Positions 1,431 through 58,854 of a DNA stretch of 64,000 nucleotides are shown here, in pieces. Numbering within the stretch: the first letter of the stretch is position 1; the number at the start of each line of letters is the position of its first letter. The DNA comes from Macrostomum lignano (taxonomy: Eukaryota), in NCBI GenBank assembly GCA_002269645.1, contig NIVC01001521.1:186001-250000 (forward strand). The letters run 5' to 3'. The position numbers and the translations under genes were made by a program. The notes under the pieces are model-generated. The model saw only the letters and a program-made list of their open reading frames with translations, was not told where the DNA came from and did no database searches.

Positions 1431-8066
<6,636 letters not shown>

Positions 8067-18934: not shown

Positions 18935-20465
18935 AGGGAGAGGGAGGGGACAGATAGAGCCTAGAGGGTACAGAGGGTAAAGGAGGGAACAATAAAATGT
19001 TGCGGAGGGGACACAGGGTGACGGATGAGAGAGAGGGTGACGGAGGGGACAGACTGAGGGAGGGACAGAGGGGACAAAGGGTGACAGAGGGGACAGAGGG
19101 TGACGGAGGGGACAGAAGCTGAGGGAGGGACAGAGAGGGGGCAGAGGGTGACGGAGGGAACAGAGTGAGGGAGGGAACAGAGGTGCGATAGGGAAGGACA
19201 GAGGTTAACGGAGGGGACAGAGGGTGCAGGAGTGGGGGACAGAGGATGACGGAGGGGACAGAGGGTGACGGAGGGGACAAAGGGTGATGGAGGGGACGGG
19301 ACAGAGGGTGCAAGAGGGAAGGACAGAGGATGACGGAGGGAACAGAGGGTAACGGAGGGGACAGGGTGACGGAGGGAACAGAGGGTGACGGAGGGGACAG
19401 AGGGTAACGGAGGGGACATAGGGTGACGGAGGGGACGGGACAGAGGGTGCAAGAGGGAAGGACAGAGGATGACGGAGGGAACAGAGGGTGACGGAGGGGA
19501 CAGAGGGTGACGGAGGGACATAGGGTGACGGAGGGGACGGGACAGAGGGTGCAAGAGGGAAGGACAGAGGATGACGGAGGGGACAGAGGGTAACGGAGGG
19601 GACAGGGTGACGGAGGGGACAGAGGGTGACGGAGGGGGCAGAGGGTGACAGTGGGGGCAGAGGGTGACGGAGCAGAGGGTGACAGTGGGGGCAGAGGGTG
19701 ATGGAGGGAACAGAGGGTGAGGGACCCGCCTAGCAAATTTTGGCCTTGTCCTGCGGCAATTCATCCGGCTGCAATTCCAGTTTTCATCCGGGAGTGTAAT
19801 GTATTTCTGCCATTTGAAAACCGGAGAAAAACTGAAAGTTATGTCTACAAACCAGACGAACACGTTTCATGTCTCCCGTTTCATCCGGAATTGAATCCGG
19901 ACACCGGATGAAAAACGGAGTACATCCGGAACAACAGCCAGGCGGGGAGGGGAGATAGGGTGACGGAGGGTACAGAGGGTGACAGTGTGACGGAGGGTAC
20001 AGAGGGTGACAGTGTGACGGAGGGGACAGAGGGTGACGGAGGGGACAGAGGGTGACGGAGGGGACAGAGGGTGACGGAGGGGACAGAGGGTGACGGAGGG
20101 GACAGAGGGTGACGGAGGGTGACGGAGGGGACAGAGGGTGACGGAGGGGACAGAGGGTGACGGAGGGTGACGGAGGGGACAGAGGGTGACGGAGGGGACA
20201 GAGGGTGACGGAGGGGACAGAGGGTGACGGAGGGGACAGAGGGTGACGGAGGGAACAAGACAAAGGGTGACGGAGGGAACAAGACAAAGGGTGACGGAGA
20301 GGACAGAGGGTGACGGAGGGGACAGAGGGTGACAGAGGGTGACGGAGGGGACAGAGGGTGACGGAGGGGACAGAGGGTGACGGAGGGGACAGAGGGTGAC
20401 GGAGGGGACAGAGGGTGACGGAGGGGACAAAACAGAGGGTGACGGAGGGAGCAAAGGGTGACGGT
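18935..20465. repeat. Purine-rich about 20-bp minisatellite CAGAGGGTGACGGAGGGGA, interrupted by a 222-bp insertion
   Basis: Direct tandem units on both sides of 19725-19946. Confidence 0.95.
19725..19946. mobile_element. Small TIR element inserted in the minisatellite, with multiple CATCCGG/CCGGATG internal motifs
   Basis: CCCGCCTAGC (19725-19734) versus GCCAGGCGGG (19937-19946), 9/10 inverted match. Flanks GAGGGA/GAGGGG. Repeated TTCATCCGG motif in both orientations. Confidence 0.55.
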
Positions 20466-28217: not shown

Positions 28218-28899
28218 ACGGGTGCCATCTTGACGGCATCAACGTGGAGGCGCTAGCAGCGCACCTGAGTCCTTTATCTCAATTCGCACTGGAAGGAGTG
28301 GCGGGTCGGCAGTGAGGGTGAGACAGAGAGAGAGGGACAGAGAGCCGAGCTGCTCGCCAACCAACTGGCTAGAGCTGCGAGTACAGGTGAGGGACTGAGC
28401 AGCATTTTATATATTTTGAAGATCTCAGACTGCACTGAGGCACAATGGGTCAGCTCAGCCTCATCAAGTACAGCTTGGGGTGGCCGCTGCAGTCACTACC
28501 TCTCCGTTGCCATGCTGGGTGCACAGAGGCGAAGGCGACGGACTCAGCGCTCATGCTCAGGAGAGAAGTTTCGGTTGCTACGGCTGGGGTGGTTGGCCTC
28601 GCCAGAGGCTGCAAAAGGGAGGGCAGCTGATAGATGAGGCGGTAAAATCTTTCTGGCAACTGGCTGCACAAACCTTTGAAACACCTGCCGCTCTGACAGC
28701 ATGGAGCATCAGTAAGATTCATCAAATTTCATGATTTGAAATTCGTTGCAAACATTAAAGCAGTGAAGCCACCCTCCACTCTTTCAGCCTCCCTGTGCCT
28801 CCCCTTTCTTCAAGTTAATTTAATTCAAAACGCAACTCACCCATCAACAGGGAAATATTTACCTTCTAGTGGAAATCACTCACCAGCGTGCTAAGTAGA

Positions 28900-30221
28900 A
28901 TGAGCCAACAAATTACTGCTGACAAGGCTGCCAAAAAAGGAGATGTCGAGGTACTCAGAGGTTATCTGACTTTTCAACAAACAGAAAACGACATATATAA
29001 CTTCTGCAAAAGCTATTCAGTATTTGCTGCAAGCGAGGGGCAGTTAGAAGCCCTCGAGTTTCTTGCGCTTAGTGTCGTTGATAAACAAAAAAGAGATGAC
29101 TGCTGCATCGAGGCTGCAAGATTTGCTACAGTTAAAGGTCAGTGGGAAGCCTTCGAGTTTCTGGTGCACACAGTCGCTGACCAGACAAACGGAGATCAGG
29201 GCTGCATCGATGCTGCCGAATTTGCAGCATCCAATCGTGTTTGGGAAGTCGTCAAGTTTCTCGTGTCGACAGTCGCTGACCATACAAAAAGAGATGACTT
29301 CTCCGTCAAGTCTGCGAAGTATACTGGAAATATTGGTCAGTTAGAAGTCGTAAATTTTCTCTTCGACACAGTCCATGACCAAACAAAAAGATATTACTTC
29401 TGCATCAAGGCTGCCAAATCTGCTGCAAGCAATCGTGAATGGGAAGTCGTCGAGTTTCTCGTCGACAAAGTCACTAGCCAAACAAAAAGAGATCACTGCT
29501 GCATCGAGGCTGCTAGATCTGCTGCAAGCAATGGTCAGATACAAGTCGTAAAGTTTCTTGTTAACAAAGTGGCTGATGAAACAGAAAGAGATCATTGCTG
29601 CATCGAGGCTGCTAGATCTGCTGCAAGCAATGGTCAGATACAAGTCGTAAAGTTTCTTGTTAACAAAGTGGCTGATGAAACAGAAAGAGATCATTGCTGC
29701 ATCGAGGCTGCTAAATCTGATGCGAAAAATGGTGAGTCGGAAGTCGTCCAGTTTCTCATTCAAACAGTCGCTGACCAAACAAAAAGAGATCACTGCTGCA
29801 TCGAGGCTGCTAAATCTGCTGCGAGCAATGGTCAGAAAGTAGTCGTCCAGTTTCTTGTCGACAAAGTCACTGACCAAACAAAAAGGGATCAGAATTGCAT
29901 CAAGGCAGCTGAAACTGCTGCACTTTACCGTCAGTGGGAAATCTTCGAGTTTCTTGTCCAGAGAGTCGCTGACCAAACAAAGATCAGTGTTGCATCGCTG
30001 CAGCTGAAACTGCTGCATGCAACTGTCAGTGGAAAGTTTTCAAGTTTCTTGTCCAAACAGTCGCTGACCAAACAAAAAGAGATCCGTGCTGCATCAAGGT
30101 TGTCAAATCTGCTTTGAGCAATCGTGAGTGGGAAGTCGTCCAGTTTCTCGTACTGACAGTCGCTGACCAAACAAAAGGAGATCAGTGCTGCATAAAGGCT
30201 GCTGAATCTGCTGGATCCTAG
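28900..30221 (+). CDS. Intronless divergent ankyrin-like repeat protein (about 13 x 33-aa repeats); 4-bp deletion frameshift near 29980 (pseudogene allele or assembly error)
   Basis: 99-bp/33-aa period with consensus DxCCIEAAxSAASNGQWEVVKFLVxxVADQTKR. After ACAAAGAT (versus ACAAAAAGAGAT in other units) the repeats continue in another frame to TAG at 30219-30221. Confidence 0.8.
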
Positions 30222-38438: not shown

Positions 38439-41400
38439 ATGGCTGAAACAATATATGACACAGTTGTCAGCTATATTGAGAATTGCAAAGCCAGCCAATT
38501 ATCTGCCAATGCGTTTGTTCTCGACGTGCTCCAACGTCTCAAAGATGAATCCGCATTTGATGACGATGTTGAAACATTTGATTTGAAATTGTGCGCCAAT
38601 AATAAGCTGTCGAATACTAGAGATATTCGTCTGGTTGATGCTGATGCTGCAGTGCTGTGCCGGACTCTGCGTTCAAGCACCATTTTTGTCTGCGTGGATC
38701 TGCGTTATAATTCCATTGGAGACTCTGGTGCCGAAGCCATTGCCGATATGTTGAGTAGTAATAAAACTATTACCATGCTCAACCTGATGTGCAACAATGT
38801 TGGAGAGGCCGGCGCCAAGGCTATTGCTAAATCGTTGCACACCAACCAGACCTTGTTGGAGCTGAATTTAGCTGGCAATAAAATCAATGATGCTGGTGGG
38901 ATGCTGTTTGCCGAGGCGCTGCAGGTTAATGCTACGTTGGAGTTTCTAGATCTCGGCGATTGCGATTTGAAAATTAATGCCGTGATTGCTCTGTCAACTG
39001 TGCTCAAGTATAACGATTCGCTGCGTGGTATCAATGTTAATAGGCCGCTGCTGTGGACTCAGCAGGAGGAGACCACTGTGAGTGCCGCATTGTTGAAGGT
39101 TCGGGTAACTGGTTCAGGGTAGGGGTTTAGACTGGAGGTTCAGGTAGGGGCTCTGACAGAGGAGGTTCAGGTAGGCGTTGAGATAGAAGGTTCAGACTGA
39201 AGGATCAGGTAGGGGTTCAGATAGAAGGTTCAGATAGAAGGTTCAGATAAAAGGTTCAGATAGAAGGTTCAGGATAGGGGTTCAGGTAGGCGTTCAGATA
39301 GAAGGTTCAGATAGAAGGTTCAGATAGAAGGTTCAGGGTAGGGGTTCAGGTAGGCGTTCAGATAGAAGGTTCAGACTGAAGGATCAGGTAGGGGTTCAGA
39401 TAGAAGGTTCAGATAGAAGGTTCAGATAGAAGGTTCAGATAGAAGGTTCAGGGTAGGGGTTCAGGTAGGCGTTCAGATAGAAGGTTCAGATAGAAGGTTC
39501 AGGGTAGGGGTTCAGGTAGGCGTTCAGATAGAAGGTTCAGACTGAAGGATCAGGTAGGGGCTCAGACTGAAGGATCAGGTAGGGGCTCAGGCAGGAGGTT
39601 CAGGTAGGGGCTCAGACAGAGGACCTTTAGGTAGGGTTTCAGATAAAATATTCAGGTAGCGGGTTCAGATTCAGGTAATTGATTAGCTAGATACACTGCA
39701 GGTTCAGTAAGAGTAGTGGCAGCAACGATTAAGATGTAGTGGCACCATTAAGTATAACCATTCATCTGATTTCTAAATTTCTCTTGACAAGTGATAAGTA
39801 TTTATCTTTTTTGCAGTCCATTTGGGTATTGAAGTTAAAATTTTGTCAAATGCAATTCCAATTGCCACGAAAAAGTGCATGTAGAGGCCATACAGTCAAA
39901 TACAATATAGAACTCGTTGACTAAGACAGATCGTTTAAAGGCGTTTCCTGTCTTGGGTACAGTCTTATAGTCTGTATAAGCATTTGTAGCAGTTTTGTCT
40001 AACTAGTGTCAGTGCGAGTGTGTGGGTTGACTTGCTGAGTGAAATCTTCTGTGCTGTGCGCGACAGTGGGAGGTTGTGGAGGCCGCCTACGCAATGTGAA
40101 GTCAGACAAGTGCACTACTTATATGGAAGAGAAATCAATAAAATCAAATCAAATAGTCCATATGAATTCTAGTCAGTGCTCAATAAGACTTACACTGGTC
40201 AATCTCATAAATGTACTTCTTGGCATTGTTAGCTCCTATATTTATATCGATTGGCACAGTTTTTAACTGGTCACAGTTGATCTAATGGACATTTCTGTAC
40301 TGACTGACTGGGTCTAATCTCTAGCCTTCTAATCTCAGCTACTTACTTTATTTCACTAAATGCAAGTGTCTTCACAGCCACCACTGAACGTATATCACTA
40401 CTACAGCCCTGAAGCTATCATCACCACAGCCCTGAAGCTATAATCACCACAGCCCTGAAGCTATAATCACCACAGCCCTGAAGCTATCATCACCACAACC
40501 CTGAAGCTATCATCACCACAACCCTGAAGCTATCGTCACCACAGCCCTGAAGCTATCATCACCACAACCCTGAAGCTATCATCACCACAGCCCTGAAGCT
40601 ATCATCACCACAGCCCTGAAGCTATCATCACCACAGTCCTGAAGCTATCATCACCACAACCCTGAAGCTATCATCACCACAGCCCTGAAGCTATCATCAC
40701 CACAGCCCTGAAGCTATCATCACCACAGTCCTGAAGCTATCATCACCACAGTCCTGAAGCTATCATCACCACAGTCCTGAAGCTATCATCACCACAGCCC
40801 TGAAGCTATCATCACCACAACCCTGAAGCTATCATCACCACAACCCTGAAGCTATCGTCACCACAGCCCTGAAGCTATCGTCACCACAGCCCTGAAGCTA
40901 TCATCACCACAGCCCTTAAGCTATCATCACCACAGCCCTGAAGCTATCGTCACCACAGCCCTGAAGCTATCATCACCACAACCCTGAAGCTATCGTCACC
41001 ACAGCCCTGAAGCTATCGTCACCACAGCCCTGAAGCTATAATCACCACAGTCCTGAAGCTATCGTCACCACAGCCCTGAAGCTATCATCACCACAGTCCT
41101 GAAGCTATCATCACCACAGCCCTGAAGCTATCGTCACCACAGCCCTGAAGCTATCATCACCACAGTCCTGAAGCTATAATCACCACAGCCCTGAAGCTAT
41201 ATCATCACCACAGTCCTGAAGCTATCATCACCACAGCCCTGAAGCTATCATCACCACAGCCCTGAAGCTATCATTACCACAGCCCTGAAGCTATAATCAC
41301 CACAGTCCTGAAGCTATCATCACCACAGCCCTGAAGCTATAATCACCAGTCCTGAAGCTATAATCACCACAGCCCTGAAGCTATAATCACCAGTCCTGAA

Positions 41401-42650
41401 GCTATAATCACCACAGCCCTGAAGCTATCGTCACCACAGCCCTGAAGCTATCATCACCACAGCCCTGAAGCTATCGTCACCACAGCCCTGAAGCTATAAT
41501 CACCAGTCCTGAAGCTATAATCACCACAGCCCTGAAGCTATAATCACCAGTCCTGAAGCTATAATCACCACAGCCCTGAAGCTATCGTCACCACAGCCCT
41601 GAAGCTATCGTCACCACAGCCCTGAAGCTATAATCACCACAGCCCTGAAGCTATAATCACCACAGCCCTGAAGCTATAATCACCACAGCCCTGAAGCTAT
41701 AATCACCACAGCCCTGAAGCTTTAATCACCACAGCCCTGAAGCTATAATCACCACAGCCCTGAAGCTATAATCACCACAGCCCTGAAGCTATCGTCACCA
41801 CAGCCCTGAACCAGCGTCACCACAGCCCTGAAGCTATCATCACCACAGCCCTGAAGCTATCATCACCACAGCCCTGAAGCTATAATCACCACAGCCCTAA
41901 AGCTATCATCACCACAGCCCTGAAGCTATAATCACCACAGCCCTGAAGCTATAATAACCACAGCCCTAACGCAACAGCTCTGAACCCATCATCACCACAG
42001 CCCTGAACCCAGTTCCCGCTCCTCACCCGCAGGTGCACATGGGCGAGATGCTGGCCCAGAACCGCAGCCTCCGCGAGCTTCATCTGGCCAAGTACGAGAT
42101 GCGCGACTTTGGCGCCAACCGCATCGCCGATGGCCTTGTTGCCAACCGCGCCCTGACGGTGCTGGATCTCAGCTGCAACCGCATCACCCGGGACGGCGCC
42201 AAAGTGCTTGCCAATGTGCTGTGTCGCGACACGCCACTGCAACTGCTGGATCTGTCCTACAACCGGCTGGAATGCGACGGCGCCAAGTGCATCGCTAGCG
42301 CACTGATTGGCGCCAACACCAATCTGCGCTGTTTGGTTATCAAATTTAACGAGATTAAAAGCGACGGCCTGGTGGCTGTGGCGGATTCGCTCAAGTACAA
42401 CACCAGTCTGGAGCGGCTTTTCATCTGGGGCAACGACCTCACGGATGCCAGTTGTGCAGCTGCGTACGCTGAACTGCTGGGATCAAGCGGTCGCTTGCGC
42501 GAGGACGACACGGATGTGCGAGCTTACAGCGTTGACGATCGCTGGTGCCTGTCCCAGGTGAACAGGGATGTGGACTACCGGTTGTACAGGTTCACGGCAC
42601 CTGTGTACGGAGATCAAGTGCCGCAGGATAGGCGGTTTCGGCTGAATTAA
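38439..42650 (+). CDS. LRRC34: Leucine-rich repeat-containing protein 34; exons 38439-39077 and 42033-42650, 418 aa
   Basis: RNI-like LRRs. The spliced junction INVNRPLLWTQQEETT|VHMGEML matches human LRRC34 INLNRPILYSEQEESTVHVGRML. Also LDLGDCDL, LDLSCNRIT, IWGN and DTDV. ACT|GTGAGT and cgcag|GTG, phase 0. Confidence 0.93.
39110..39680. repeat. 13-bp-based minisatellite GGTTCAGATAGAA / GGTTCAGGTAGG in the LRRC34 intron
   Basis: Direct. Confidence 0.92.
40405..42010. repeat. 23-bp minisatellite CACAGCCCTGAAGCTATCATCAC, about 70 copies, running to within about 25 bp of the LRRC34 acceptor
   Basis: Direct. Confidence 0.98.
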
Positions 42651-43090: not shown

Positions 43091-43879
43091 TCAGAATCTT
43101 TTAATTAGACAGATTAGAGATTAATATCTATGAATTGGAATCTCTACATAATTAAATTTTAACAATAACTACTGTGGGAACTGCCGATAAGCATGATTGC
43201 TAAAATTTGTTTAAAGCTGTGATACACTTATTATGTTTATTTATCAAATCCAATTTTGCTTTCTTATATCCTAATGTAGTTTTTCTTTTTATTTTTCTCC
43301 TATAAGAATAAATGTTTTTATAATCTGCAGTAATTTTACAATACCGAGAAACTGCTGTTTTTATTTTTCAAAGAAACAACAACTTCAAGATCTCAAGCGA
43401 TGTTTTCGATCCGTCCTGTACTCCTGTTGCTTGTTATACTGTATTATAAAAAGCTAAAATATCTGATTTTCTGTTTAGATTTTCTCTAGACTAGCTTCTA
43501 TTGCTGAAAATAAAAACCTGTTTTTTTTTGGTTGGTTGAAAAATCATCCCTATTTTCACTTGAAGTCACCTGCTTGTTTTTAATTTAAAAAGGGCCTAAT
43601 TAAGCTACAATTAGATTTTTATTATTAATTGAAATTTTGTCGGACCGGTAATTGACTTTGGTGCTTAGATTTAATTGCGCGTGCCCGGGAGTGGTTCAGC
43701 AGGGGGGTGTAATAAAAGGTCAAATGCTAATTACAGCCGCTGCGCAGATAAAATCAGACTCGTATCAATTTAGTTGATTATAAATTAATTTTCGTATGTA
43801 GCACGTTTTCACTACTAAAAGTAGTTCAAATATGATAACAAATGATAATTCATGCTATCTTCGCGAGTGTGTCTGGTTT

Positions 43880-46800
43880 ATGTCAGCCTTCGGTTCACCT
43901 GACGGCTCCTCAGCGTAAGTCTGGAAATTCATTTAAGCTGTTTTAACTACTTATTTCAAGCCCGAAAAAGTAGTATAAAGGCAAAATAAGCTCTAATATT
44001 GATGCAAAAACTTGTGTTTTTTTATAGATTCGAGGAGCTGTCATCGCTGAATGAGACATTTTCCTACTTAAACCCAAACGATCACAGACTTTATCACGAA
44101 GTGTGAGTTGTTTTTGATTTTCACTAGTACTATCAAGTGTTTTTACTACTGCTAATTATTAGTAGTATATTGTTTGAAGATTATTTATGTATTTAATATT
44201 AATATTTATTTTTCCAGATCGCCCAAATCTAATTACACCTACGCTTACAGGTAAGGTTACTGCTAAGTAGTATAGTGTTGTTGTTATGCTAAAAGTGTAG
44301 TTGAATAAATAATAATAATAATGATTATGATTGCTTAATATACTACTTTCCAGCGGCAGCTATCAGACCGAGTTGCTGCACCGTAATTGGCGCAGTCCGA
44401 ATTTGAGTCGATCACCTTTGCACAGCCCACCTGGCAACACGGCTGGCTGTTTTGCTGGCTCGCCCAGTCCTTTCAACAGTGAGTCATCCGTGTTTTTGAC
44501 TTTTAATTTGTTTGGATTGTGAATTGTCATTTTAAAAATCCGAAAATTTGGATTAAGTGTCTTAATCCTGATTCGGTGGTCTCTTAATACAGATTCGGTG
44601 GTCTTTTAATCCAGGTTCGGTGGCCTCTTAATCCAGATTCGGTGGTCTCTTAATCCAGGTTCGGTGGCCTCTTAATCCAAATTCAGCACCCCTTAATCCT
44701 GGTTCGGTGGCCTCTTAATCCAGATTCGGTGGTCTCTTAATCCAGGTTCGGTGGCCTCTTAATCCAGATTCAGCGCCCCTTAATCCTGGTTCGGTGGCCT
44801 CTTAATCCAGATTCGGTGGTCTCTTAATCCTGGTTCGGTGGCCTCTTAATCCAGATTCGGTTGCCTCTCAATCCACATTCGGCGTGTCTCTTAATCGAGA
44901 TTCGGCGCCCCTTAATTCAGTTTCGGCGCCCCTTAATTCAGTTTCGGCGCCCGTTTAATCCAGGTTTGGCGTATCTAACTAACGCCCTAATTCCTGATTC
45001 ACTGCACTACATATGCGAACTTGCAAAGCATTTTGAAGTATAAATTTATTCCCACTAACGCCACATTGCAGTTGCTCCAGTCAGCCCCGTTAGCATCGTT
45101 GGCTCCTCGTCGGCCTCGACTGCCAGCGGCAGCGTCGGCAGCAGCGGCATTGGCATCCGTGAGCGTCGAAGATTTTCAGCGTCAACTCTGTCGCTACACG
45201 GCAGCAGCGAGTCCGATCGTGTGCTCAGATCGCGCTGCCGGGCCGAAGGCGGCGTCCACTGCGGCCACGTCGATTGTCGGCTGCACGGCGTTGCTTCGTT
45301 GAAGTCGACATCTTCTGGTGGTCGACGATCTGTCCGATTCAAGCTGCGAACTGCCGACGGCGATACGTTGACAGCGGGAGATGCTGCTCATGAATATGAT
45401 GATGATGGCAGTGACGATGAGGATCACCAGGGAGACAGAGGCACGGTTGAGGCCACTCTGAGCAGGCAATACTATGAAGGTGCTCAGTACCAACCAGACT
45501 ACGCTTACAATTCTGGTTTGAGTAGTAGGACTACCATGTCAACTGTTAGAACAGCAACAACAACAACAACAACAAGTAGAACTATGCTGGCAAATACTAA
45601 ACAAAAGATAGTCTCCGGTTTGTTCACCGCAGTAGCTTTCTCGGCCAATTTGGCAAAAGCGACTGCTCAGTTTGCATTGGCTCCGCTGGTTTCTGCAATA
45701 TCGGCAGTTAAAGATTCAGTTACTGCTGTGTCATCTTCTAGGTCTGCGGCGGTTTCTGTCACTAGACAGCAGCATTATCGGAATGTTCAACGCAAAAGCT
45801 CGTGGTGTTTCTGTTCTAGTTCGACTCTGCTATTGCTGTTGTGTTTGCTAATATTTCTTCCGCTAGCTTTGCTAACTGTCTGGTGGTACATATTGCCACC
45901 GATTCTTGCTGCACTGCGCAATAGCAATGGTACCACTGCGCACACTTCCACTGGAGTTCCGCTAGATGCAGTCGGCGGTCAACAAGGATGCTGCGATTCG
46001 AAAATCGTTGCCAACATGGAGCTGCGCTGGAATCAAGAGCTGACAGAGATGCGTAGCATGTTGAACCTGCTGGCCCAACAGAGGGAGAATGATGAGGCGC
46101 AGAGGAAGCTGCTGTTGCAGCGATTAGCTCAACAGACTAATAGCCAAGTTGTGGTCGGTTTGGATTCTACAGACGAGAATAATTCCACAGAAATTGAGCG
46201 TCAAATTGCTGTTTTACGTCAAGCAGATGCGGATCAGCTGCAGTTCACCTCGTCAATGTCGGATAGGATTAGTAAATTGGAGCAGGCGCATTTGAGTTTG
46301 GCAGGCAAGCTTCGACAACAGATTTTGAGTGAGCTGTCAGGGCGTATGGACACTGTGACGCAACGGGTTAGAAACGAAGAAGAGCGTAGTCAGCAGAAGT
46401 GGAACGAGCATGAGCAACAGTTAACGTCGTTAAAAAAACATGCAGATGAGCAAGCTAAGCATATCGCAGCTGCTGTCAATCAGTTAGACACCGTTGAAAA
46501 AGCGGAGAAGTCGCTATCTAAGTCGGTGTCAGAGCAACAGCGTGCTCAGCAAGATGCTGAAAAAGAGCATTTAAAACTGGCCGCCGATGTTAGAGAGCAG
46601 TTGGGCGAGTATGAAAACCGGCTATCATTGTTGCAGAAGACACTATTGGAGCAGAAGTCGCTTGTCACTGATACTAATAATCGCTTGGTATTAATTGAAG
46701 GCTCAACATCTGAGTCTGCCATTGCTGAGAAGCAGCAGCAGCAGACCTTATTAGACTTGCAGCGTGACATAGGTGAGCATAAAAGCATGATACTGCTTTT

Positions 46801-49800
46801 GCAGAAAGCCAGTTCAGAACAGAAAGAAAGCGAAGCTTTGGTGGCCAAACGGTTAGATTCGGTTGAGCAGAAAAGTGATGAAGAACGCCAGAAGCTTGCG
46901 GAGCTACTTCAGCAGCAATTAGAGAAGCAGCAGAAGCAGCTAACTGCTTTAATGAATTCTGAGTCGAAGTTAAACAAGCAGACGTCGGACATATCCGAGC
47001 GTCTTATTGCGATTGAAAAAATGCCTCCAAAAGCCTCTTCAACTGAATCAGTTGTCAAACCAAGCGAAGGTGATACAATCTATCAAACTTTGACGGTAAA
47101 GATTCAACAGCAGTTAAATGACAATAGCCAGGAGATTGTGTCGCTTAAAGAAGCAGATTCTGAGCAGAAAAAGAATGCTGCGAGTGTTGCTGATCGGCTC
47201 ACTGCGATTGAGAAAGCCTCTAGGGAGAATCAAGACAAGATGCAGCAGGATATGCAACAGCAAATGGCCGATTTCCAGAAGCAGTTGGCACAGCTGCGCA
47301 AAGATGGTGATGAACAGCGAGAATCCACCACTTCTTTGTCTGGTCGCTTGACTACTTTAGAATCGTCTGTAGAATCTGCCACAATAAACGAATCAAATGA
47401 AAACAAGGATCGAAGTAATTTGATGAAAGAGTTCAATGAGCAGTTGAAGCAGCATCAGAACCAGTTTGAATTGCTGCGGCAGACTGATTCTGGACACCAA
47501 GAGCTGGTAACCGCCATTGCGAAACGTTTAAGCAGCTTAGAGACGTCAATGTCATCTGCTACGAGCACGAGAAAGCAAGATGATAAGAGCGAGGAGGGCG
47601 AGAAAATTTCCGATGTGATTCGACATCAACTAGGCGAGTTAAAAGATCAAGTATCACAGCTTCAACAAGTGGAAGCTGAACAACGAAAGCTGACTGCCAC
47701 AGTATCTGATCGACTAGATGTGGTCGAATCTAAGCTAGCCTCATCGTCATCTACTCAGCAAAATGATGATGCTGTTGCCCAGCAAAAGCTTATATCTGAT
47801 TTGCAACAGAATCTTGTCAACTATCAGAGACAGATTGACTTGTTGAAACAGGCGGATGTACAACAAATCGAGACAGATGACTCCTTTGTCAAACGTTTAA
47901 TTGCTGTAGAAAAATTAGTCTCAGAGGTGAAAACTGGATTGCGCAATAGTGACTCAGACAGAGAGAAGCAGCTTCTGGAACTTCGCAACCTAATGGAGAC
48001 CTGTCAGAAGCAGCTGTCGCAGTTGCAAGAGTCTGAAATCGAGCTGAGAAAATCCAGCGTTTCTATGTCGGAGCGTATCGAATCTGTACACCTCATGGCT
48101 TCATCTAATCATGAGAATGCAACTGCTGAGCGGCTTAAGCTGGCCAGTGACTTAGATAATCAGAACAGGCTGCTACAGCAAATGCAGCTGGCAGAGTCTG
48201 AACAAGTAACTACAATTAGTGGCATCTCAGAACGCTTGCTAGCTATTGAAGCTGTGCTCTCCTCTGCAGCTAGCCTAAAAGACGGCGGCGAGGATGGTAA
48301 ACGGCGAAAAGCAATGATTGATCTGCGACAACATTTGAGCGATTATCAAAAGCAGTTGGAGCAACTGCGCCAGGCTGAGGCTGAGCAGAAAAAACTGGTA
48401 GAAGCTGTTCAGCAACGTTTAGTGTCGGTTGAATCGACTCTGAATTCGTTTGGCGAATCTAAGCCAGTAAATGTTGAGTCTGCTGAGACTTCACAACCAA
48501 ATTCTGATCTTACCAAGCAGAATAATGAGATTTCGGTATTGCAGGAAAAGTTAAAAGAATATCAAGTTCAAATAGGCGCCATCTCTGAGCGGCTCGATGC
48601 AAATGAGAAGATTTCTGAAAATGCTTCTGTAGAGGCTAAGTCGGCTGTAGCTTTGGTTAAGCAATTTGATAGTGACGAAATGCAAAAAGAACTAATTGCA
48701 GAGATGAAAAATCAATTGAGTGGTTATGAAGATCAGCTGAAGCTATTGCAGGACAAGGAGTCTGAAAAGCAAAAGTTTGTTGCAAAATTGTCGGAACAGT
48801 TGACTGCTCTGGAAGCTGCTGTCTCGGCAAATGCGCTATCAAAAGAAGCTGAGGTTAAGAAACAAGAGAAGCAGAAATCCGATCTGGAAAAACAACTCAA
48901 TGCCTATCAGCTGCAGTTGGCGTTGCTTAAAGACGCAGAAGCGGAACAGCGAAAACTTTCCACGGCCGTCTCTGAACGTCTAAGTGCTCTTGAGACTGCA
49001 TCCACTTTGTCAGATGAGCACAACTCAGCTGAGCGTTCCAAACTAGCTAAAACTTTCGAGCAGCAACTGTCCGGTTATCAAGAGCAGTTATTGCTATTAA
49101 AACAGTTTAGTACGGAGCAGCAGAGTGTGAATGCTAATGTTTCTGATCGATTATTTGCATTGGAATCGTCAATAACCTCATTAGGAGCAGATAAGGAAAG
49201 TCTGGTTGAAGATCTCGTAAAGCTTAAAGAAGCTGAAGCTGAACTGCGTAAACTTGCAACATCCGTGTCGGAGCGTCTTGCAACTGTTGAATCAACCGTG
49301 GCATTGTTGACTTCTAGCAAGTCGCAATATGCAGCAGATCAGTCCAAGTTAACAGTGGAATTGCAGGACCAGTTCAGCACTTACCAGCAGCAGCTGGCTG
49401 TCCTCAAAGAAGCAGAAGTTGAACAACGCAAACTTGCTTTAACAGTGACAAAGCGTCTTGATGAGCTCGAGTCCAGCTTGAAGACGGTCACTAAACAAGT
49501 AAAAGCAGAAGATTTGAAGCAGCAGCTTGAAGAGTATCAGAGAAATTTAGATGCTAAGCATCAGATTTTTGTTTCAAATGTATCCGAACGGATAAATGCT
49601 GTAGATGCATCCTTCTCTGCTGCACAGGAGAACGGTTTAGGCGAACAGCAAAAGCTAACAGTCGAACTACAACAGCAGTTAAACAACTATCAGCAGCAGC
49701 TGGTGCTTCTGCAACAGACTGAAAGCGATAATAAACAACGCCTATTCGCTGTTGAATCTTCTGCAGCATCTATTGCTGGTGAAGACGAAGGTCGCAGACA

Positions 49801-51574
49801 GTCTATTGCTGCACTACAGAGGCAGGTAAATAACATCGAGGAGCAACTAGCTCAGCTGAAAGATTCTCCACCAGTGCCTGGTAGCAGCTGCAATGACACC
49901 GTAAACGAGACTTATTCAGCTGGTAACGTCACCGAAGCAGTTCGGCTGCATCGTCAGCTGGCGGAGTACCGCAGGCGACTTGTCGCCGTTGAACGACTGG
50001 CCTCTAGCAGCTGCAACTGCAGCATTCGCGACTTCAAAGCTGAGGATCCATTTCCAAACTTAGTGCCGGACTTTGCTCTGCACAGCGCTGGCGCCTACGT
50101 GGTTGGCACCCGGTGCACTGTGGCCTATAACGGCCAGGCCTCCGTTGTGGAACTGTTCGGCTTCCCTGTGTTGGCCTTCTCACGGTCGCCAACTACAGCA
50201 TTGGAGCCCGACACCAATCTGGGCGAGTGCTGGGCCTTCCAGGTGCGCTGACTACGGGCTGTTGCAGAGTTTCTGACAAATCAAAACTTGTCTGACTGTG
50301 TGTCAGTGTCTGTCCTTGTGTCCGACTTAGTGGCTGTCTCAGTGTCTGTCTCAGTGTCTGTCTTAGTGACTGTCTCAGTATCTGTCTCAGTGTCTGTCTC
50401 AGTGTCTGTCTTAGTGACTGTCTCAGTGTCTCTCACAGTGTCAGTCTCAGTGTCTGTCTCAGTGTCTGTCTCAGTGTCTGTCTCAGTGTCTGTCTCAGTG
50501 TCTGTCTTAGTGACTGTCTCAGTGTCTGTCTCAGTGTCTGTCTTAGTGTCTGTCTCAGTGTCTGCCTCAGTGTCTGTCTCAGTGTCTGCCTCAGTGTCTG
50601 CCCAGTGTCTGCCTCAGTGTCTGTCTCAGTGTGTGTCTCAGTGTCTGTCTCAGTGTCTGCCCAGTGTCTGCCTCAGTGTGTGTCTCAGTGTCTGTCTCAG
50701 TGTCTGCCCAGTGTCTGCCTCAGTGTCTGCCTCAGTGTCTGCCTCAGTGTCTGTCTTAATGTCTTTCTCAGTGTCTGCCTCAGTGTCTGTGTCAGTGTCT
50801 GTGTCAGTGCCCCTCCTAGTGTCTGTCTCAGTGTCTGTCTCAGTGTCTGTCTCAGTGTCTGCCCAGTGTCTGCCTCAGTGTGTGTCTCAGTGTCTGTCTC
50901 AGTGTCTGCTCAGTGTCTGCCTCAGTGTCTGCCTCAGTGTCTGCCTCAGTGTCTGTCTTAATGTCTTTCTCAGTGTCTGCCTCAGTGTCTGTGTCAGTGT
51001 CTGTGTCAGTGCCCCTCCTAGTGTCTGTCTCAGTGTCTGCCCAGTGTCTGCCTCAGTGTCTGTCTCAGTGTCTGCCCAGTGTCTGCCCAGTGACTGCCTC
51101 AGTGTCTGTCTCAGTGTCTGTCTGTCTCACACAGTTTATAAACAAATTTTTCTATCAGACAGATCTTTATCGGCTATTTATAATTAAGTGTATTTTTAAA
51201 AAACAAACTCGCTTCAATCTCTCTGTCCGCAGGGCTTCCCCGGACATCTCATAGTCCGCCTGGCCGTGCCCGCCAGAGTCAGCTCGGTGACCATCGACCA
51301 TGCCGCCAGGGAGGTGTCCTACAATGCCTCCATGAGCAGCGCGCCGCGGAACTTCTCTGTCTATGGCCTGGAGTCCTCCTACACAGCTTTCACCGAAGCT
51401 GTGATTTTGGGTTCCTTTGTCTACAACGCCGACACGGGACCCGCTTCGCAGACGTTTCATCTCAATTCGACCACTGAACGCTACTGGGAATACGTGGAAC
51501 TGGTTGTTGAGAGTAACCATGGCAACGAGATGTACACCTGTCTGTATCGGTTCAGGGTGCACGGTTTGGCCTAG
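43880..51574 (+). CDS. SUN-domain (Sad1/UNC-84, SUN1/2-type) inner nuclear membrane LINC protein, about 1926 aa; exons 43880-43914, 44028-44102, 44218-44250, 44354-44478, 45072-50242, 51233-51574
   Basis: All six exons join in frame with GT-AG sites (phases 2,2,2,1,0). N-terminus SNYTYAYSGSY...SPNLSRSPL resembles SUN1 TGYTYALSSSY...SPRMSRRSL. TM near 45827-45895. C-terminal PDFALHSAGA, TRC, LFGFP, PDTNLGECWAFQ|GFPGHLIVRL, TIDH, SAPRNFSVYGL, SNHGNEMYTCLYRFRVHG. Confidence 0.93.
44560..44970. repeat. 22-bp minisatellite G(A/G)TTCGGTGG(T/C)CTCTTAATCCA in SUN intron 4
   Basis: Direct. Confidence 0.93.
50290..51130. repeat. 12-bp-based minisatellite TCAGTGTCTG(T/C)C in SUN intron 5
   Basis: Direct; VS/QCLS ORFs are artefacts. 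Confidence 0.96.
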
Positions 51575-51679
51575 CGCTGTGACTTATCATATTTTTAATA
51601 TATATTACTGTCACTAAGGTGTGCTTTGAAGTCTCAGTATTCAGTGTAGGACACCTGCCATTGAGTTCAAACATCAATC

Positions 51680-52080
51680 CTTGAGAGTCTGCCCTCTCGA
51701 CTCCCCTCAGTCCGTGAGAGTCTGCCCTCTCGACTCCCCTCAGTCCGTGAGAGTCTGCCCTCTCGACTCCCCTCAGTCCGTGAGAGTCTGCCCTCTCGAC
51801 TCCCCTCAGTCCGTGAGAGTCTGCCCTCTCAACTCCCCTCAGTCCGTGAGAGTCTGCCCTCTCAACTCCCCTCAATCCGTGAGAGTCTGCCTCTCAACTC
51901 CCCTCAATCCGTGAGAGTCTGCCCTCTCAACTCCCCTCAGTCCTTGAGAGTCTGCCTCTCAACTCCCCTCAGTCCTTGAGAGTCTGCCTCTCAACTCCCC
52001 TCAGTCCTTGAGAGTCTGCCTCTCAACTCCCCTCAGTCCTTGAGAGTCTGCCCTCTCAACTCCCTCAGTCCGTGAGAGTC
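51680..52080. repeat. 33-bp minisatellite GAGAGTCTGCCCTCTC(G/A)ACTCCCCTCAGTCC(G/T)T, about 12 copies, 3' of SUN
   Basis: Direct. Confidence 0.95.
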
Positions 52081-53199
52081 TGCCCCTCCACTCTCTCAGG
52101 CCTCAGTCCCTGTGAACCCGTGAAACCTACTTAATACCTATGCTTAAGCTTAAAAAAAACAAGTAGTTTTTTTGTATTTTAACTTGTATAAAGGCGTATT
52201 ACACGTGTAATCGTTGCAACGAATGTTAAATTAGTTTTTGTTTGTTAAAGAAAATTTAATATTTATAGTAGGAAATTTTGTTAACAACTTTGAACTTTTA
52301 TACTTTGTGTGTTAATAAATATTTATTTATCAAGTTTACACAGTATAATATTTCTACTTATGAAACGGCATTTTCACTTAATTACAAACCGCATCATGAA
52401 CAGCCTGAGTTAATGAAAATTTGTTTAAATTCGTGTTGTTGCTAAATTTAAAATCGAACAATTTTTTGCATGCTCATATCTCTGAATGATAACTTTGATA
52501 TTTGCCTGTTTATGAATCGAGGTCCATTGTTTTTATTTATATGAATTCTGTGTCATTTTTATTCACTTTTTCACATTAAAATCCGCATCTTCATGTGCAA
52601 TCGCTTAACTCCATGATTTCTAAGATTTCCCAAAAAATTGGCTCAAATAGCGCACTTAAAAAAACAAAGGAAAACTTTTTTCTTAGAAAAGCATTTTTGG
52701 AGGCTGGGTTTTTGGGAACAAGTGTTGCTAGTTAATAACGAATTCTTCTCATAGTTAACTCTCATTAAGCATTGTGTTAATTATCCATTTTGAGCACGTA
52801 TAACATAACACATGAGAACCGCAAGATTAGAATCTCCCTAGTTTTAGACTTATTTAATATTTATTATAATAACGCCATATTTTTTGCCAGGTTTGTCGTT
52901 ATTGTTACACACCAAGTTTTTTATTGTTCAATTAATTTATCAGCGTGTCTCTCAGCAGGATATCAATTTTACCGTACTCTGTTGTTTTCTAACAAAAATG
53001 TGAGATTACTCAATTTCTTTATGTAGCTTGTAAAAAGTCATGAACAAGCACATTTTTGAAAGTGAAGACGCTGTCATATTTAAATACAATTTAGGGAATT
53101 TGTTGCAGTATCTTAATGTCTTGTGGTTCTTGTTTTATATTATTATAAATTTTTGTATTATCTTGGAAACTGCTATAATTTAGATAGGTGAATTTTGAG

Positions 53200-53320: not shown

Positions 53321-53446
53321 TGTGGTTGTAATTATCTCATAGTCTAGCAAGAACCCAACTGTTGAACTATATGAAATCTTTTCAGCTCATTAACTAATAT
53401 TAAAATCGATCAATTATTGAGCAAAGATCGCTCATCCAGCAAAATA

Positions 53447-55272
53447 ATGTCGGATTCTGCAGGCATTCACGAGACCGATCTGAACCCGTCATATGCCCCT
53501 ACTCGCAATCGGTCAAAGCAAATATTTGCTTGCTTACTAAAGCTGCTCATGGTTGGCGTCACCCTTAGTCTTGGCATCCTACTCATAGTAGTCAGTATAG
53601 TTTTAGTTGCAGTTTTCCCGTCTGTATTCCGTTCACGAATTGCGAGCTCAATGCCGCTAGTGAATGGCAGTTTCACTTTCAAGGCTTGGAATTCTCCCAG
53701 TACACCAATCTACATGCAGTTCTGGCTGTTCAGCATCACTAATCCCCAAGAATTCCTGTCTGGCGGTAAACCCCTGCTCAATGATGTCGGACCGTTCACC
53801 TATCAGGAGCGACGAGTGAAGTCTGGCGTTGAATTCAACTCAAATGGCTCTGTGCTGAGATATCAGCAATCAACATTTTATCATTTCAGGCGGGATTTGT
53901 CCTGCTGCTGGGAGGATACAAATGTCACAACTTTGAATCTGATGTACGTTGGTTTGACCCACAAGATGCAGTACAGTAGTAGTTACGTCAAAAACATTGC
54001 AAACAATTTATTAAGAAGCGGCAAGCATCGATTGGTGATGACCCGGCCTGCTAAACAGATTCTGTGGGGTTATCACGATGTACTTTTGAAAACTATGCAG
54101 CCAATAGCCAGGCTAGCTGGCGCTACACTAAAAAGTGAACTGGGTCTATTTGCCGATAAGAATGGCAGTCTAGGCGACCCCTACCAGATCCGCACCGGAG
54201 CTGATGACGTCAATCGTCTTGGAGAAATTATCACTTGGAAAGGTTTAGATCGTCTGCTACATTGGAACAGCTCTCAGGCCAATATGATTAATGGCACTGA
54301 TGGGGCCATGTTTCCGCCGTTTGTGTCTCGCTCCGACTTGCTGTACTTGTTCAGCTCCGACATATGCCGGTCGATTTATCTCAAGTATAGGGGCGATGTG
54401 ATGCTCCACAATACTGTGCCATTGTACAGGTGAGCTATAGCTGCGTGTTCACTGCCCGTTCTGTGCTGTGTGTGCAATGTTTGTGTCTTTAACTTAGTTG
54501 GTATAGTCACTCTTGTGGGTATGCTTCTGTCACTCTTGTGTTGATGTTTCAGTCACTCTTGTGGGGATGCTTCTGTCACTCTTGTGGTGATGCTTCAGTC
54601 ACTTTTGTGTTGATGTTTCAGTCACTCTTGTGGGGATGCTTTTGTCACTCTTGTGGAGATGCTTCTGTCACTCTTGTGGTGATGCTTCTGTCACTCTTGT
54701 GTTGATGTTTCAATCACTCTTGTGGGGATGCTTCTGTCACTCTTGTGGGGATGCTTCTGTCACTCTTGTGGGGATGCTTCTGTCACTCTTGTGGGGATGC
54801 TTCTGTCACTCTTGTGGAGATGCTTCTGTCACTCTTGTGGGGATGCTTCTGTCACTCTTGTGGAGATGCTTCTGTCACTCTTGTGGGGATGCTTCTGTCA
54901 CTCTTGTGGGGATGCTTCTGTCACTCTTGTGGGGATGCTTCTGGCACTCTGTGGAGAATGTTTGTCACTCAGCCGCCACTTGCCCCCCCCCAGGTTTCAA
55001 GCACCAGCCGAGATGTTCATGAACGCCACTCTGAACCCCAGCAATCGCGGCTTCTGCTTAGACGGCCGCTGCCTGGACTCCGGTGTGCTCAACATCTCCG
55101 CCTGCGCCGAGGGCGCCCCCATCCTCATGTCGCAGCCGCATTTCTACCAGGCCGCTGCGCAGTACCAGGACGCTTTGGGGGGCCTCAGTCCCGGCCCCGA
55201 GTTTGACACCGTGCTGGATGTGGAGCCCAACACTGGACTGGTTATGCGGGCCGCCAAGAAGCTGCAGGTGTG

Positions 55273-55305
<33 letters not shown>

Positions 55306-56008
55306 TAGTGTCTGTCTTAGTGTCTGTGTGTCTGTCTGTCTGTGTGTGTGTCTGTCTGTGTGTCTGTCTGTCTGTCTGTCTGTGTCTGTCTGTCTGTTTG
55401 TCTGTCGGTCTGTCTGTCTGTATGTCTGCCTGTCTGTTTGTCTGTCTATCTATCTATACCTACCTACCCACTCGCAGATCAACATGGCGGTGACCCCCAG
55501 CCGGCAGTTCGCAGACCTGCAGAACCTCAACAGCACACTGATCATGCCGCTAGCCTGGCTGAATGAGTCGGCCTGTCTGGACCCGGAGTCGGCAGGGAAA
55601 TTCCGAGCCGGGGTGCTGCAGCCCCGCGACACAGTGGCCCGAGTGCAGTGGAGCCTCCTGGCTATCGGCTTCCTGCTGTGCGGCCTCGCTCTGCTCTGCC
55701 TCGGCTTCAAGTGCCGCCGGCGCTACCTGCGTCAGCGTGCCGGGCCGCGCAGCCTCCGACTCTGCGCCGGCAAAGCCTCGTTCGCGTCCACCTCGTCAAC
55801 GGCGTCGCCATGCAAACGGGGCAGCTTGGCGGCCAACCCTGGCAACGGCTTGGTTAGCAACGGGTCCCACGGCGGCGACATGGATGATAACACTCCCGCT
55901 TCCACTCTGCTGGCATCGGCCTCTGCCTCCGCGGCTGCAGATGCGGCTAGTCAGCCTCTTGATGATGAAGCTGAAACTGCCGAAACTGTCATTGGTGCTG
56001 GAGCTTGA
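53447..56008 (+). CDS. Second CD36/SCARB-family scavenger receptor; exons 53447-54429, 54994-55267, 55478-56008, about 595 aa
   Basis: Same motif series as the first paralog ([73 protein letters not shown], two TMs). Splice sites AG|GTGAGC..cag|G (phase 2) and CAG|GTGTGT..gcag|ATC (phase 0). Confidence 0.94.
54505..54950. repeat. 23-bp minisatellite GATGCTTCTGTCACTCTTGTGGG filling CD36-2 intron 1
   Basis: Direct. Confidence 0.96.
55268..55465. repeat. (TCTG)n/(TG)n microsatellite making up nearly all of CD36-2 intron 2
   Basis: Direct. Confidence 0.96.
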
Positions 56009-57234: not shown

Positions 57235-58250
57235 CACTGCCCTCCCAGATCCTCAGTGTCTGGGCCAGCCTCCCAGATCCTCAGTTGCTGGGCCAGCCGC
57301 CCAGATAGATCCTCAGTTGCTAGGCCAGCCTCCCAGATCCTCAGTGTCTGGGCCAGCCTCCCAGGTCCTCAGTTGCTGGGCCAGCCTCCCAGATTCTCAG
57401 AGGGCCACCAGCCTCCCAGATCCTCAGTGTCTGGGCCAGCCTCCCAGATCCTCAGTGTCTGGGCCAGCCTCCCAGATCCTCAGTGTCTGGGCCAGCCTCC
57501 CAGATCCTCAGTTGCTGGGCCAGCCGCCCAGATAGATCCTCAGTTGCTAGGCCAGCCTCCCAGATCCTCAGTGTCTGGGCCAGCCTCCCAGGTCCTCAGT
57601 TGCTGGGCCAGCCTCCCAGATTCTCAGAGGGCCACCAGCCTCCCAGATCCTCAGTTGCTGGGCCACCAGCCCAGATCCTCAGTTGCTGGGCCACCAGCCT
57701 CCCAGATCCTCAGTTGCTGGGCCACCAGCCCAGATACTCAGTTGCTGGGCCAGCCTCCCAGATCCTCAGTCTCTGGGCCAGCCTCCCAGGTCCTCAGTTG
57801 CTGGGCCAGCCTCCCAGATTCTCAGAGGGCCACCAGCCTCCCAGATCCTCAGTTGCTGGGCCACCAGCCCAGATCCTCAGTTGCTGGGCCACCAGCCTCC
57901 CAGATCCTCAGTTGCTGGGCCACCAGCCCAGATCCTCAGTTGCTGGGCCACCAGCCTCCCAGATCCTCAGTCTCTGGGCCAGCCTCCCAGATCCTCAGTT
58001 GCTGGGCCAGCCTCCCAGATTCTCAGTTGCTGGGCCAGCCTCCCAGATCCTCAGTTGCTGGGCCACCAGCCCAGATCCTCAGTTGCTGGGCCACCAGCCC
58101 AGATCCTCAGTTGCTAGGCCACCAGCCCAGATCCTCAGTTGCTGGGCCACCAGCCCAGATCCTCAGTTGCTGGGCCACCAGCCTCCCAGATCCTCAGTTG
58201 CTGGGCCACCAGCCCAGATACTCAGTTGCTGGGCCACCAGCCCAGATTCT
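57235..58250. repeat. Same 27-31-bp minisatellite, second block with higher-order duplications
   Basis: Direct; QPPRSSVAG ORFs are artefacts. Confidence 0.96.
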
Positions 58251-58854
58251 TAGTGACAAAATTTATCTGTATAATGAATAAACAAATTTGCACAAAAAAT
58301 TGTGAAATAAGTTTTTTGCCACAAAAATCTAAGCCATGCAATTTGAATTCTCGCGGTCTGTCTGGTGGTTTTTTCGTTTTCGTTATGACCGTGCTCAGCT
58401 TGATCAGCAGCGAGGTGCGCAAATGCAGTCCAAGCCTTAATGCTGACTGACTTGAATTGAAGCCTTTCCAACTTGCCAAAGTAATTATTTGAAATATGAA
58501 TTTCTACTTAATATTTCTTCTTTTTCTGTTACGAGCAATACCAGCAAAAGCCGTGCGTTTTGTTAATTTTTGCTTTTGGACTTTTGGGCTTGGTTGCAGC
58601 TATAATTTCTGCTATCCTTCATCAACTCCTGCTCACACAGTTGCTTGTACCGTAAACCGGGTGTTTTCTGGCAGTTTATTGTGATTGTTTAGCTCTGTCT
58701 GTCGCAATAGTATTTGCTGATGACTGTTATTTCAATACGATTTTCAGTTCAGGTTGATTGCTTCAATCATGTACATTAGGCATTGTGCGTGCCTTTGAAT
58801 CTATTTTGCGTTTATTGGTTGCTTTTTTGTAAGACCATGCAGTCAAGAAACTCA

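Follow-up and report, generated by a model that had tools for sequence, protein, structure and literature searches.

A Macrostomum lignano SUN Protein With a Giant, Repeat-Built Stalk Predicted to Form a Lumenal Coiled-Coil Tether

The window analyzed here is a stretch of 64,000 nucleotides (nt) from the flatworm Macrostomum lignano (positions 186,001 to 250,000 of contig NIVC01001521.1, GenBank assembly GCA_002269645.1; coordinates below are positions in this window). On its forward strand it carries a gene for a giant SUN protein of 1926 amino acids (aa), which consists, from the N-terminus onward, of a 340-aa domain, one transmembrane segment (TM), a stalk of 1386 aa and, at the C-terminus, a SUN domain. 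We propose that this is a canonical SUN protein whose repeat-built stalk would act as a jointed trimeric coiled-coil tether, lying bent or oblique in a perinuclear lumen of normal width and giving slack, extensibility or lateral reach. To this statement as a whole we assign a probability of roughly 0.45; several of its parts are better supported, and are treated separately below.

Gene Model and Transcript Support

The coding sequence (CDS) was reconstructed by enumerating the combinations of GT and AG splice sites that keep the frame open. The resulting six-exon join (43880–51574, + strand), with all introns GT..AG, gives a CDS of 5781 nt and 1926 codons with a sole, terminal stop, in exact agreement with the length of about 1926 aa proposed in an earlier reading made from the letters alone (the sequence-only reading). 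The exons are as follows:

43880..43914, + strand, exon 1: ATG start, aa 1–12; identical in PAA66908.1
44028..44102, + strand, exon 2: splice enumeration
44218..44250, + strand, exon 3: splice enumeration
44354..44478, + strand, exon 4: splice enumeration
45072..50242, + strand, exon 5: 5171 nt, single open frame, aa 90–1813
51233..51574, + strand, exon 6: second part of the SUN domain (aa 1814–1926) and stop codon

Exon 5 supplies the bulk of the nucleoplasmic domain together with the TM, the entire stalk and the initial ~58 aa of the SUN domain, and its splice to exon 6 rebuilds the conserved sequence CWAFQG/FPG (the slash marks the junction). In the list of open reading frames (ORFs), an uninterrupted frame of 1676 codons is found at 45221–50251, with the short exons on its flanks. 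As a frame of this length lies within one exon, a chance origin is ruled out, and as one 5.17-kb exon covers everything from the TM through the stalk into the SUN domain, a fusion of two genes or a fusion artefact is excluded as well.

The GenBank entry PAA66908.1 ("hypothetical protein BOX15_Mlig007247g1, partial"), which maps to contig NIVC01001521.1 of the M. lignano assembly GCA_002269645.1, is 100% identical, has the same exons and contains 3 additional 5′ codons (1929 aa). The annotation of this assembly was built from RNA-seq transcripts with StringTie, TACO and a de novo transcriptome, and ORFs were called with TransDecoder (PMC5730564). The transcript-derived public CDS retains the whole exon 45072–50242; the case that the sequence-only reading had named against itself, transcripts that splice out most of 46200–49800, is thus not what this RNA-seq-derived model shows.

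Upstream of the start codon we identified one further element:

43866..43867, + strand, putative spliced-leader trans-splice acceptor AG, 12 nt before the ATG

The annotated products of this gene and of its second genomic copy (described below) open with VWF-M and CVWF-M, respectively, which corresponds to the translation of 43868–43879, directly after the AG. Trans-splicing is common in M. lignano (PMC5730564). The AG is probably a spliced-leader acceptor, and the mature mRNA would in that case have the ATG at 43880 as its first start codon.

Domain Organization and the SUN Head

The domains and motifs of the protein are located as follows:

45236..45277, + strand, Cys/His motif C-x7-C-x-H-x2-C, aa 145–158, in the nucleoplasmic domain; sequence SRCRAEGGVHCGHVDC
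45824..45916, + strand, TM helix, aa ~341–371; Kyte-Doolittle 19-aa mean up to 2.87
45917..50074, + strand, lumenal stalk, aa 372–1757 (1386 aa), from the TM end to the SUN start; heptad statistics and AlphaFold2
46175..50002, + strand, tandem array of ~21–22 repeats of 50–67 aa, aa 458–1733; self-HMM
50066..50242, + strand, first part of the SUN domain, aa 1755–1813, holding Cys1771 (50114–50116); Pfam and phmmer

A hydropathy scan yielded a single strong hydrophobic segment (aa ~341–371), coinciding with the TM previously placed near aa 342–365, and none C-terminal of the SUN domain. Basic residues flank the TM on its N-terminal side, and 15 N-x-S/T sequons as well as the disulfide cysteines lie C-terminal to it, which suggests a nucleoplasmic N-terminus and a lumenal C-terminus.

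The SUN domain is readily identified. Pfam Sad1_UNC (PF07738) matches aa 1793–1924 with an E-value of 1.1e-33 (116.6 bits against a cut-off of 22) and stops 2 residues short of the C-terminus, an extreme C-terminal placement. When the last 250 aa were compared with the sequences of the human SUN2 and SUN1 crystal structures, phmmer returned E-values of 1e-40 to 3.4e-42 (best 4fi9/4dxt), and the SUN2 alignment is essentially ungapped from aa ~1755, the position at which the domain had been predicted to start. The TRC cysteine that binds KASH, reported as retained in the sequence-only reading, is Cys1771 (50114–50116), with GTRCTVAY aligned under STRCSETY of SUN2. The SUN disulfide cysteine pair is kept as well (ECWAFQG and YTCLYRFRVHG), and the KASH-lid region has a normal length, free of indels relative to SUN2. 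In SUN2 we take C563 to be the cysteine disulfide-bonded to KASH, and C601/C705 to be the intradomain disulfide pair.

Two other classes of SUN protein were considered. The mid-SUN class (plants, fungi, protists) is excluded by the C-terminal position of the SUN domain and by the lack of a later hydrophobic segment. A short testis-type SUN (SUN3/4/5, SPAG4) is excluded by the 1386-aa stalk, as the lumenal domains of those proteins are shorter than those of SUN1/2 (PMC4615189). The protein shows every hallmark tested of a C-terminal SUN that binds KASH, and the most economical reading is that the gene product is a SUN1/2/UNC-84/Klaroid-type protein, predicted to be a KASH-binding subunit of the LINC (linker of nucleoskeleton and cytoskeleton) complex in the inner nuclear membrane.

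The likeness to human SUN1 and SUN2 (PDB 4dxs, 4fi9, 6r15, 5ed8) extends from the head, which is ~45% identical and shares the KASH cysteine, the disulfide pair and the ungapped KASH-lid, to the type-II single-TM layout and to a stalk made of discrete coiled-coil segments and flexible linkers (PMC10320395). The difference lies in scale and origin: the human stalks have 2 coiled-coil segments in ~300 aa, whereas the giant SUN has ~21 segments in 1386 aa, all from one amplified module that was undetected in 259 other SUN proteins. The Pfam scan found no match in the giant SUN to PF18580, the helix-turn-helix family of SUN2.

In the nucleoplasmic domain, the Cys/His motif (in its extended form R-S-x-C-x7-C-x-H-x2-C, SRCRAEGGVHCGHVDC) is shared with a 1003-aa paralog of M. 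lignano (59% over 37 aa) and with the Dicrocoelium and Fasciola SUNs. It has no Pfam match; it could be a zinc knuckle conserved among flatworms.

The Stalk Is an Array of Diverged Coiled-Coil Modules

From the end of the TM to the start of the SUN domain the stalk measures 1386 aa, close to the estimate of about 1390 aa in the sequence-only reading. A profile hidden Markov model (HMM) seeded with one unit and iterated on the protein itself (self-HMM) identified 22–24 domains, most with independent E-values of 1e-11 to 1e-18. In the stalk, the units lie 49–67 aa apart from aa 458 to ~1730, giving a module of ~58 aa. Every unit is a conserved core of 38 aa (consensus QQQLNEYQRQLSLLQQAESEQRKLVASVSERLDAVESS) followed by a variable linker of 4–31 aa, rich in Ser, Thr and acidic residues. 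The cores are 13–53% identical in pairwise comparisons (mean 30%), and a few of their positions are nearly invariant: L14, R31, L32 and E36 are found in 16–17 of 18 units, and E20 in 15.

At the DNA level, Tandem Repeats Finder (TRF) found no tandem repeat inside exon 5 and reported intronic and 3′ minisatellites only. Inflation of the gene by the assembly, or a recent repeat expansion, is ruled out by this repeat-free exon DNA together with the ~30% core identity; cores that have diverged this far while keeping L14, R31, L32 and E36 nearly invariant indicate an array that is old and constrained rather than an assembly artefact. The stalk appears to have arisen by old tandem amplification of a ~58-aa coiled-coil module, present today in about 21 copies.

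Several statistics point to a coiled coil. The similarity autocorrelation of the stalk peaks at lags 7 and 14, as expected for heptads, and near multiples of ~60. The a/d contrast of the heptads reaches 0.43, which is ~12 standard deviations above the value for shuffled sequences (0.255 ± 0.014). Within the core, hydrophobic residues occupy positions 4, 7, 11, 14, 25, 28, 32 and 35, with the polar residues E18 and Q21 in the middle. In our reading, the core positions would form a continuous a/d heptad register, in which R31 (position g) and E36 (position e) may form an interhelical i to i′+5 pair as in parallel coiled coils. Gly and Pro are rarer in the cores (13 of 45, though the cores make up 58% of the stalk), and the linkers are enriched in Ser, Thr, Gly and Pro.

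Two single-sequence monomer runs of AlphaFold2, covering aa 372–1301 and 1289–1926, were used for secondary structure alone because of the low confidence of the models. They predict a stalk that is ~88% helical, with helices of ~50–170 aa that are broken, with dips in the predicted local distance difference test (pLDDT), at the linkers. A non-helical juxtamembrane segment of 25 aa and a 19-aa break (PPVPGSSCNDTVNETYSAGN) ahead of the last, SUN-proximal helix were also predicted. At ~0.15 nm per residue, the ~1200 helical residues correspond to a contour of ~180 nm, and 1386 aa in fully helical form to ~205 nm. The extended coil of about 200 nm envisaged in the sequence-only reading holds as an upper bound; as one continuous rod it does not, since the stalk is divided into ~21 helical modules with linkers.

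We also considered a catalogued helical-repeat rod, of the spectrin-repeat or another kind. With Pfam at E ≤ 0.01 over the whole protein, Sad1_UNC was the only match, and no spectrin or other bundle family was found on the stalk. A Foldseek search of the low-confidence model against the PDB gave nothing at E ≤ 0.001; insignificant matches to long-helix axonemal proteins were discarded. In the absence of a family match on the stalk in either search, this candidate was rejected.

Stalk Length Among SUN Proteins

To place the stalk among its relatives, the C-terminal 1200 aa were searched with phmmer against 1.84 billion cluster representatives, which gave 186 proteins at E ≤ 1e-30. Of these 186 matches the best 150 are listed; the survey includes cluster representatives and metagenome fragments, and other Macrostomorpha and planarians are perhaps absent from the sample. 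The stalk was taken to run from the last strong hydrophobic segment (simple hydropathy threshold) to the SUN domain, located in 261 proteins.

In 144 other SUN proteins with a TM, the stalk has a median length of 307 aa, a 90th percentile of 451 aa and a maximum of 724 aa. With 1386 aa, the giant SUN is an outlier at ~4.5 times the median and about twice the maximum, in line with the earlier description of a stalk with roughly four times the length of the human SUN1/2 stalks. The longest proteins overall (1200–1481 aa, from prawn, Owenia, abalone and lamprey) are large through their N-terminal regions. Among the matches listed, a SUN domain joined to the stalk repeats occurs in no other protein, and of the 261 SUN-containing proteins the repeat HMM matches just the two copies from M. 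lignano. The giant SUN is known from one lineage only.

Two results of these searches were set aside. P0094, a protein of 2451 aa with 24 matched stretches, was examined as another giant, and proved to contain ~24 reiterations of the last ~50 SUN-domain residues plus a linker; it has no long stalk and looks like a tandem-duplication, gene-model or assembly artefact of another animal genome. The C-terminal 317 aa were also used in a word-indexed protein search, which was rejected as a length survey, as it returned only matches of ≤550 aa and missed the identical 1929-aa entry; such a search is seemingly biased by candidate length and misleading for this purpose.

Outside Macrostomum, the SUN domain is best matched, among the proteins listed, by the trematode SUNs, with 39–48% identity (Schistosoma, 1114 aa; Dicrocoelium, 1141 aa; Fasciola, 1146 aa; Trichobilharzia, 959 aa). 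Their stalks, as well as that of Heterobilharzia, are ~430 aa long, against 1386 aa in the giant SUN. Closer still is the 1003-aa paralog of M. lignano (PAA65290.1, P0096 in our survey, with two further copies), which is 58% identical in the SUN domain and has two motifs in common with the giant SUN, the N-terminal C-x7-C-x-H-x2-C and, past the TM, GCC. It differs in having a stalk of ~350 aa (hydrophobic segment at aa 433–470, SUN domain from aa ~820–830) and no significant copy of the repeat according to the repeat HMM. The flatworm relatives found thus have stalks of ordinary length, which speaks against the second case that the sequence-only reading had raised against itself, similarly long SUN proteins being common in related taxa, and the comparison suggests that the giant SUN is a lineage-specific paralog of an ordinary flatworm SUN.

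The sequence-only reading was aware of no SUN protein described with this architecture, and in our literature search we found no description of a comparably long or giant SUN stalk, nor of this gene or of relevant flatworm SUN work. GenBank carries the sequence as a "hypothetical protein"; otherwise it is undescribed as far as we found.

A Second Genomic Copy Indicates Selection on the Frame

A second copy of the gene (PAA92837.1, 1930 aa) is located on contig NIVC01000038.1, with the entire frame intact and the same neighbors as at the first locus, a leucine-rich repeat (LRR) gene upstream and a CD36 gene downstream. Exon 5 differs between the copies at 73 of 5171 nt (98.55% identity), is of equal length and aligns gap-free in MAFFT (blastn: 2 gap openings). 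The 8.2-kb alignment of the two copies, introns and flanks included, contains 43 gap openings, at most 2 of which lie inside exon 5, and outside this exon the copies mismatch at about 3.5%. A gap-free exon 5 amid ~40 indels in its non-coding surroundings indicates that frame-breaking changes have been removed from the stalk-coding sequence. The reading frame and the general character of the stalk are kept. For the stalk, the ratio of nonsynonymous to synonymous divergence between the copies (Nei-Gojobori dN/dS) is ~0.6, with 41 nonsynonymous and 19 synonymous differences.

These data bear on the possibility that the giant stalk is an artefact of annotation or isoform choice, in which the principal mRNAs would lose a large part of the array by splicing, or the gene would be in decay following a recent genome duplication. 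The weak purifying selection (omega ~0.6) would be compatible with it, as would the fact that the gene model is backed by short-read-based transcript assemblies only. It is contradicted by the 5.17-kb frame, open at two loci with equal length and free of gaps in MAFFT while the flanking non-coding DNA has collected ~40 indels; by repeats that at ~30% identity still hold the heptad pattern and the invariant residues; and by the transcript-derived CDS, which contains the whole of exon 5. We consider this explanation very improbable.

Arrangement of the Stalk in the Nuclear Envelope

Human SUN1 has been modeled as discrete trimeric coiled coils with flexible linkers that barely span a lumen of more than 40 nm (PMC10320395). 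By analogy, the giant SUN would trimerize in parallel like other SUN proteins and bind KASH peptides at the outer nuclear membrane. Its stalk would then consist of short trimeric coiled coils, jointed by hinges that are flexible and rich in Ser/Thr; this follows the "linked coiled-coil domains" design put forward for human SUN1, enlarged about tenfold, with a contour of ~180–200 nm. Such a chain would most probably be bent, zig-zagged or oblique in a lumen of normal width; the LINC complex would gain slack, extensibility or lateral reach, and the membranes would not be held 200 nm apart.

The experimental system of the ruler hypothesis is C. elegans UNC-84, in which deletion of 300 aa of the stalk left the envelope un-narrowed (PMC4615189). 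UNC-84 resembles the giant SUN as a large somatic SUN with a long, poorly conserved lumenal linker; it differs in that its length was only shortened by experiment (residues 556–861 removed), whereas the flatworm protein represents a natural lengthening by about 1000 aa. The lack of narrowing upon shortening of UNC-84 favors a bent or oblique stalk in a lumen of normal width. It argues against a trimeric stalk that stands approximately perpendicular to the membranes as an upright ruler, making or stabilizing a widened cisterna (100–200 nm) or local evaginations of the outer membrane. Such an arrangement would follow the original "molecular ruler" idea for SUN stalks described in PMC4615189; the ~180–200 nm contour of the ~88% helical, 1386-aa stalk is in its favor, and the g-e′ pattern favors parallel in-register pairing and hence elongated assemblies. 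Nevertheless, about 18–20 flexible breaks make a stiff 200-nm rod unlikely, and our literature search found no report on perinuclear spacing in Macrostomum. We regard an upright ruler as quite unlikely.

Alternatively, the helices of a single chain or of the trimer could fold back into hairpins or three-helix bundles, with a resting length of ~50–80 nm, and unfold under load as a shock absorber comparable to spectrin or titin repeats. Regular helices of ~50 aa with flexible linkers of 5–16 aa have the geometry that this requires, and SUN2 and SUN1 fold their pre-SUN helices into an autoinhibited form (5ed8, 5ywz; PMC10320395). By our arithmetic, 21 helices of ~7 nm packed in threes amount to ~50 nm, near the normal lumen. 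On the other hand, the stalk has no Pfam match to spectrin or another bundle family, Foldseek found nothing significant and only generic long-helix proteins, and the invariant R31(g)/E36(e) pair fits parallel better than antiparallel packing. We judge a folded spring to be possible, yet rather unlikely.

A further question is where the protein acts. It may be restricted to one type of cell. More specifically, it could serve in the germline or in sperm (for nuclear shaping, head-tail coupling or the attachment of telomeres in meiosis) or in membranes of the endoplasmic reticulum instead of acting as the general somatic LINC subunit, with the 1003-aa paralog in charge of housekeeping. Animals often keep somatic and germline SUN proteins separate, and M. 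lignano does have this second SUN, with an ordinary stalk and in three copies. The relaxed dN/dS of ~0.6 resembles the fast evolution reported for reproduction-related genes in Macrostomum (PMC7336406). Against a specialized site, PMC4615189 describes the known germline SUNs (SUN3–5 and SUN-1 of C. elegans) as the shorter ones, and a search for expression data, given below, found none. As this proposal concerns the place of action, it can be combined with each of the structural models; we consider it unlikely.

Returning to the bent or oblique tether, four points weigh against it or limit our confidence. The AlphaFold2 models have a mean pLDDT of 52–55 and a predicted TM-score (pTM) of ~0.3, and as monomer models they are uninformative on oligomeric state and fold-back. 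The dN/dS of ~0.6 implies that residue-level constraint is weak and that individual residues evolve fast. Isoforms that skip part of the large exon may exist. Finally, a search of papers and supplements for the gene identifiers Mlig007247 and Mlig020561 found no expression data.

Other Features of the Window

Three minisatellites identified by TRF lie within or next to the gene:

44560..44963, strand not assigned, 22-bp minisatellite, 18 copies, in intron 4
50299..51123, strand not assigned, 12-bp minisatellite (TGTCTCAGTGTC), 69 copies, taking up most of intron 5
51674–52093, 33-bp minisatellite, 13 copies, beginning 100 nt past the stop codon

Their copy numbers are unequal between the two genomic copies of the gene. 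The window as a whole is unusually dense in micro- and minisatellite arrays, with 36 TRF rows at a score of at least 300 (for example at 1–571, 3464–4914, 5909–6955, 10175–11257, 19003–20464, 40403–41967 and 57241–58254), and these arrays account for the strong GC- and AT-skew excursions of its composition profile.

Two genes of the CD36 scavenger-receptor family are present. The first (15816–17465, − strand) is an apparently intronless ORF of 549 aa (Pfam CD36, E 3e-122); the second (53393–56008, + strand) is spliced and located downstream of the SUN gene. An ORF with ankyrin repeats (28888–30117, + strand) has 33-aa repeats that are visible in the DNA as a 99-bp tandem repeat (11.5 copies, 76% matches), an expansion much younger than that of the SUN stalk.

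Implications for SUN Protein Biology

The giant SUN offers a natural gain-of-length case for the question whether the length of the SUN stalk sets or limits the 30–50 nm spacing of the nuclear envelope, for which the sole direct test so far, in C. elegans, used a shortened stalk and saw no narrowing. It combines a canonical KASH-binding head with a stalk of ~4.5 times the usual length, and the ordinary-length paralog in the same genome provides an internal control. M. lignano is transparent and amenable to RNA interference (RNAi) and transgenesis (PMC5730564), which makes localization, spacing and mechanics testable.

The 38-aa core with its invariant L/R-L/E residues is a clean example of how a coiled-coil tether can grow by module duplication, and parallels the "linked coiled-coil" model of human SUN1. 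It is doubtful that the stalk is used at full length in particular cells, where the LINC complex would bridge a perinuclear space several times wider than 30–50 nm, or would form a long extensible tether, with ~150–200 nm of movement of the outer membrane and cytoskeleton relative to the lamina before force is passed on. If this were true, the protein would be the first natural "long ruler" SUN, and with it the spacing hypothesis could be put to a direct gain-of-length test in an animal open to transgenesis and RNAi.

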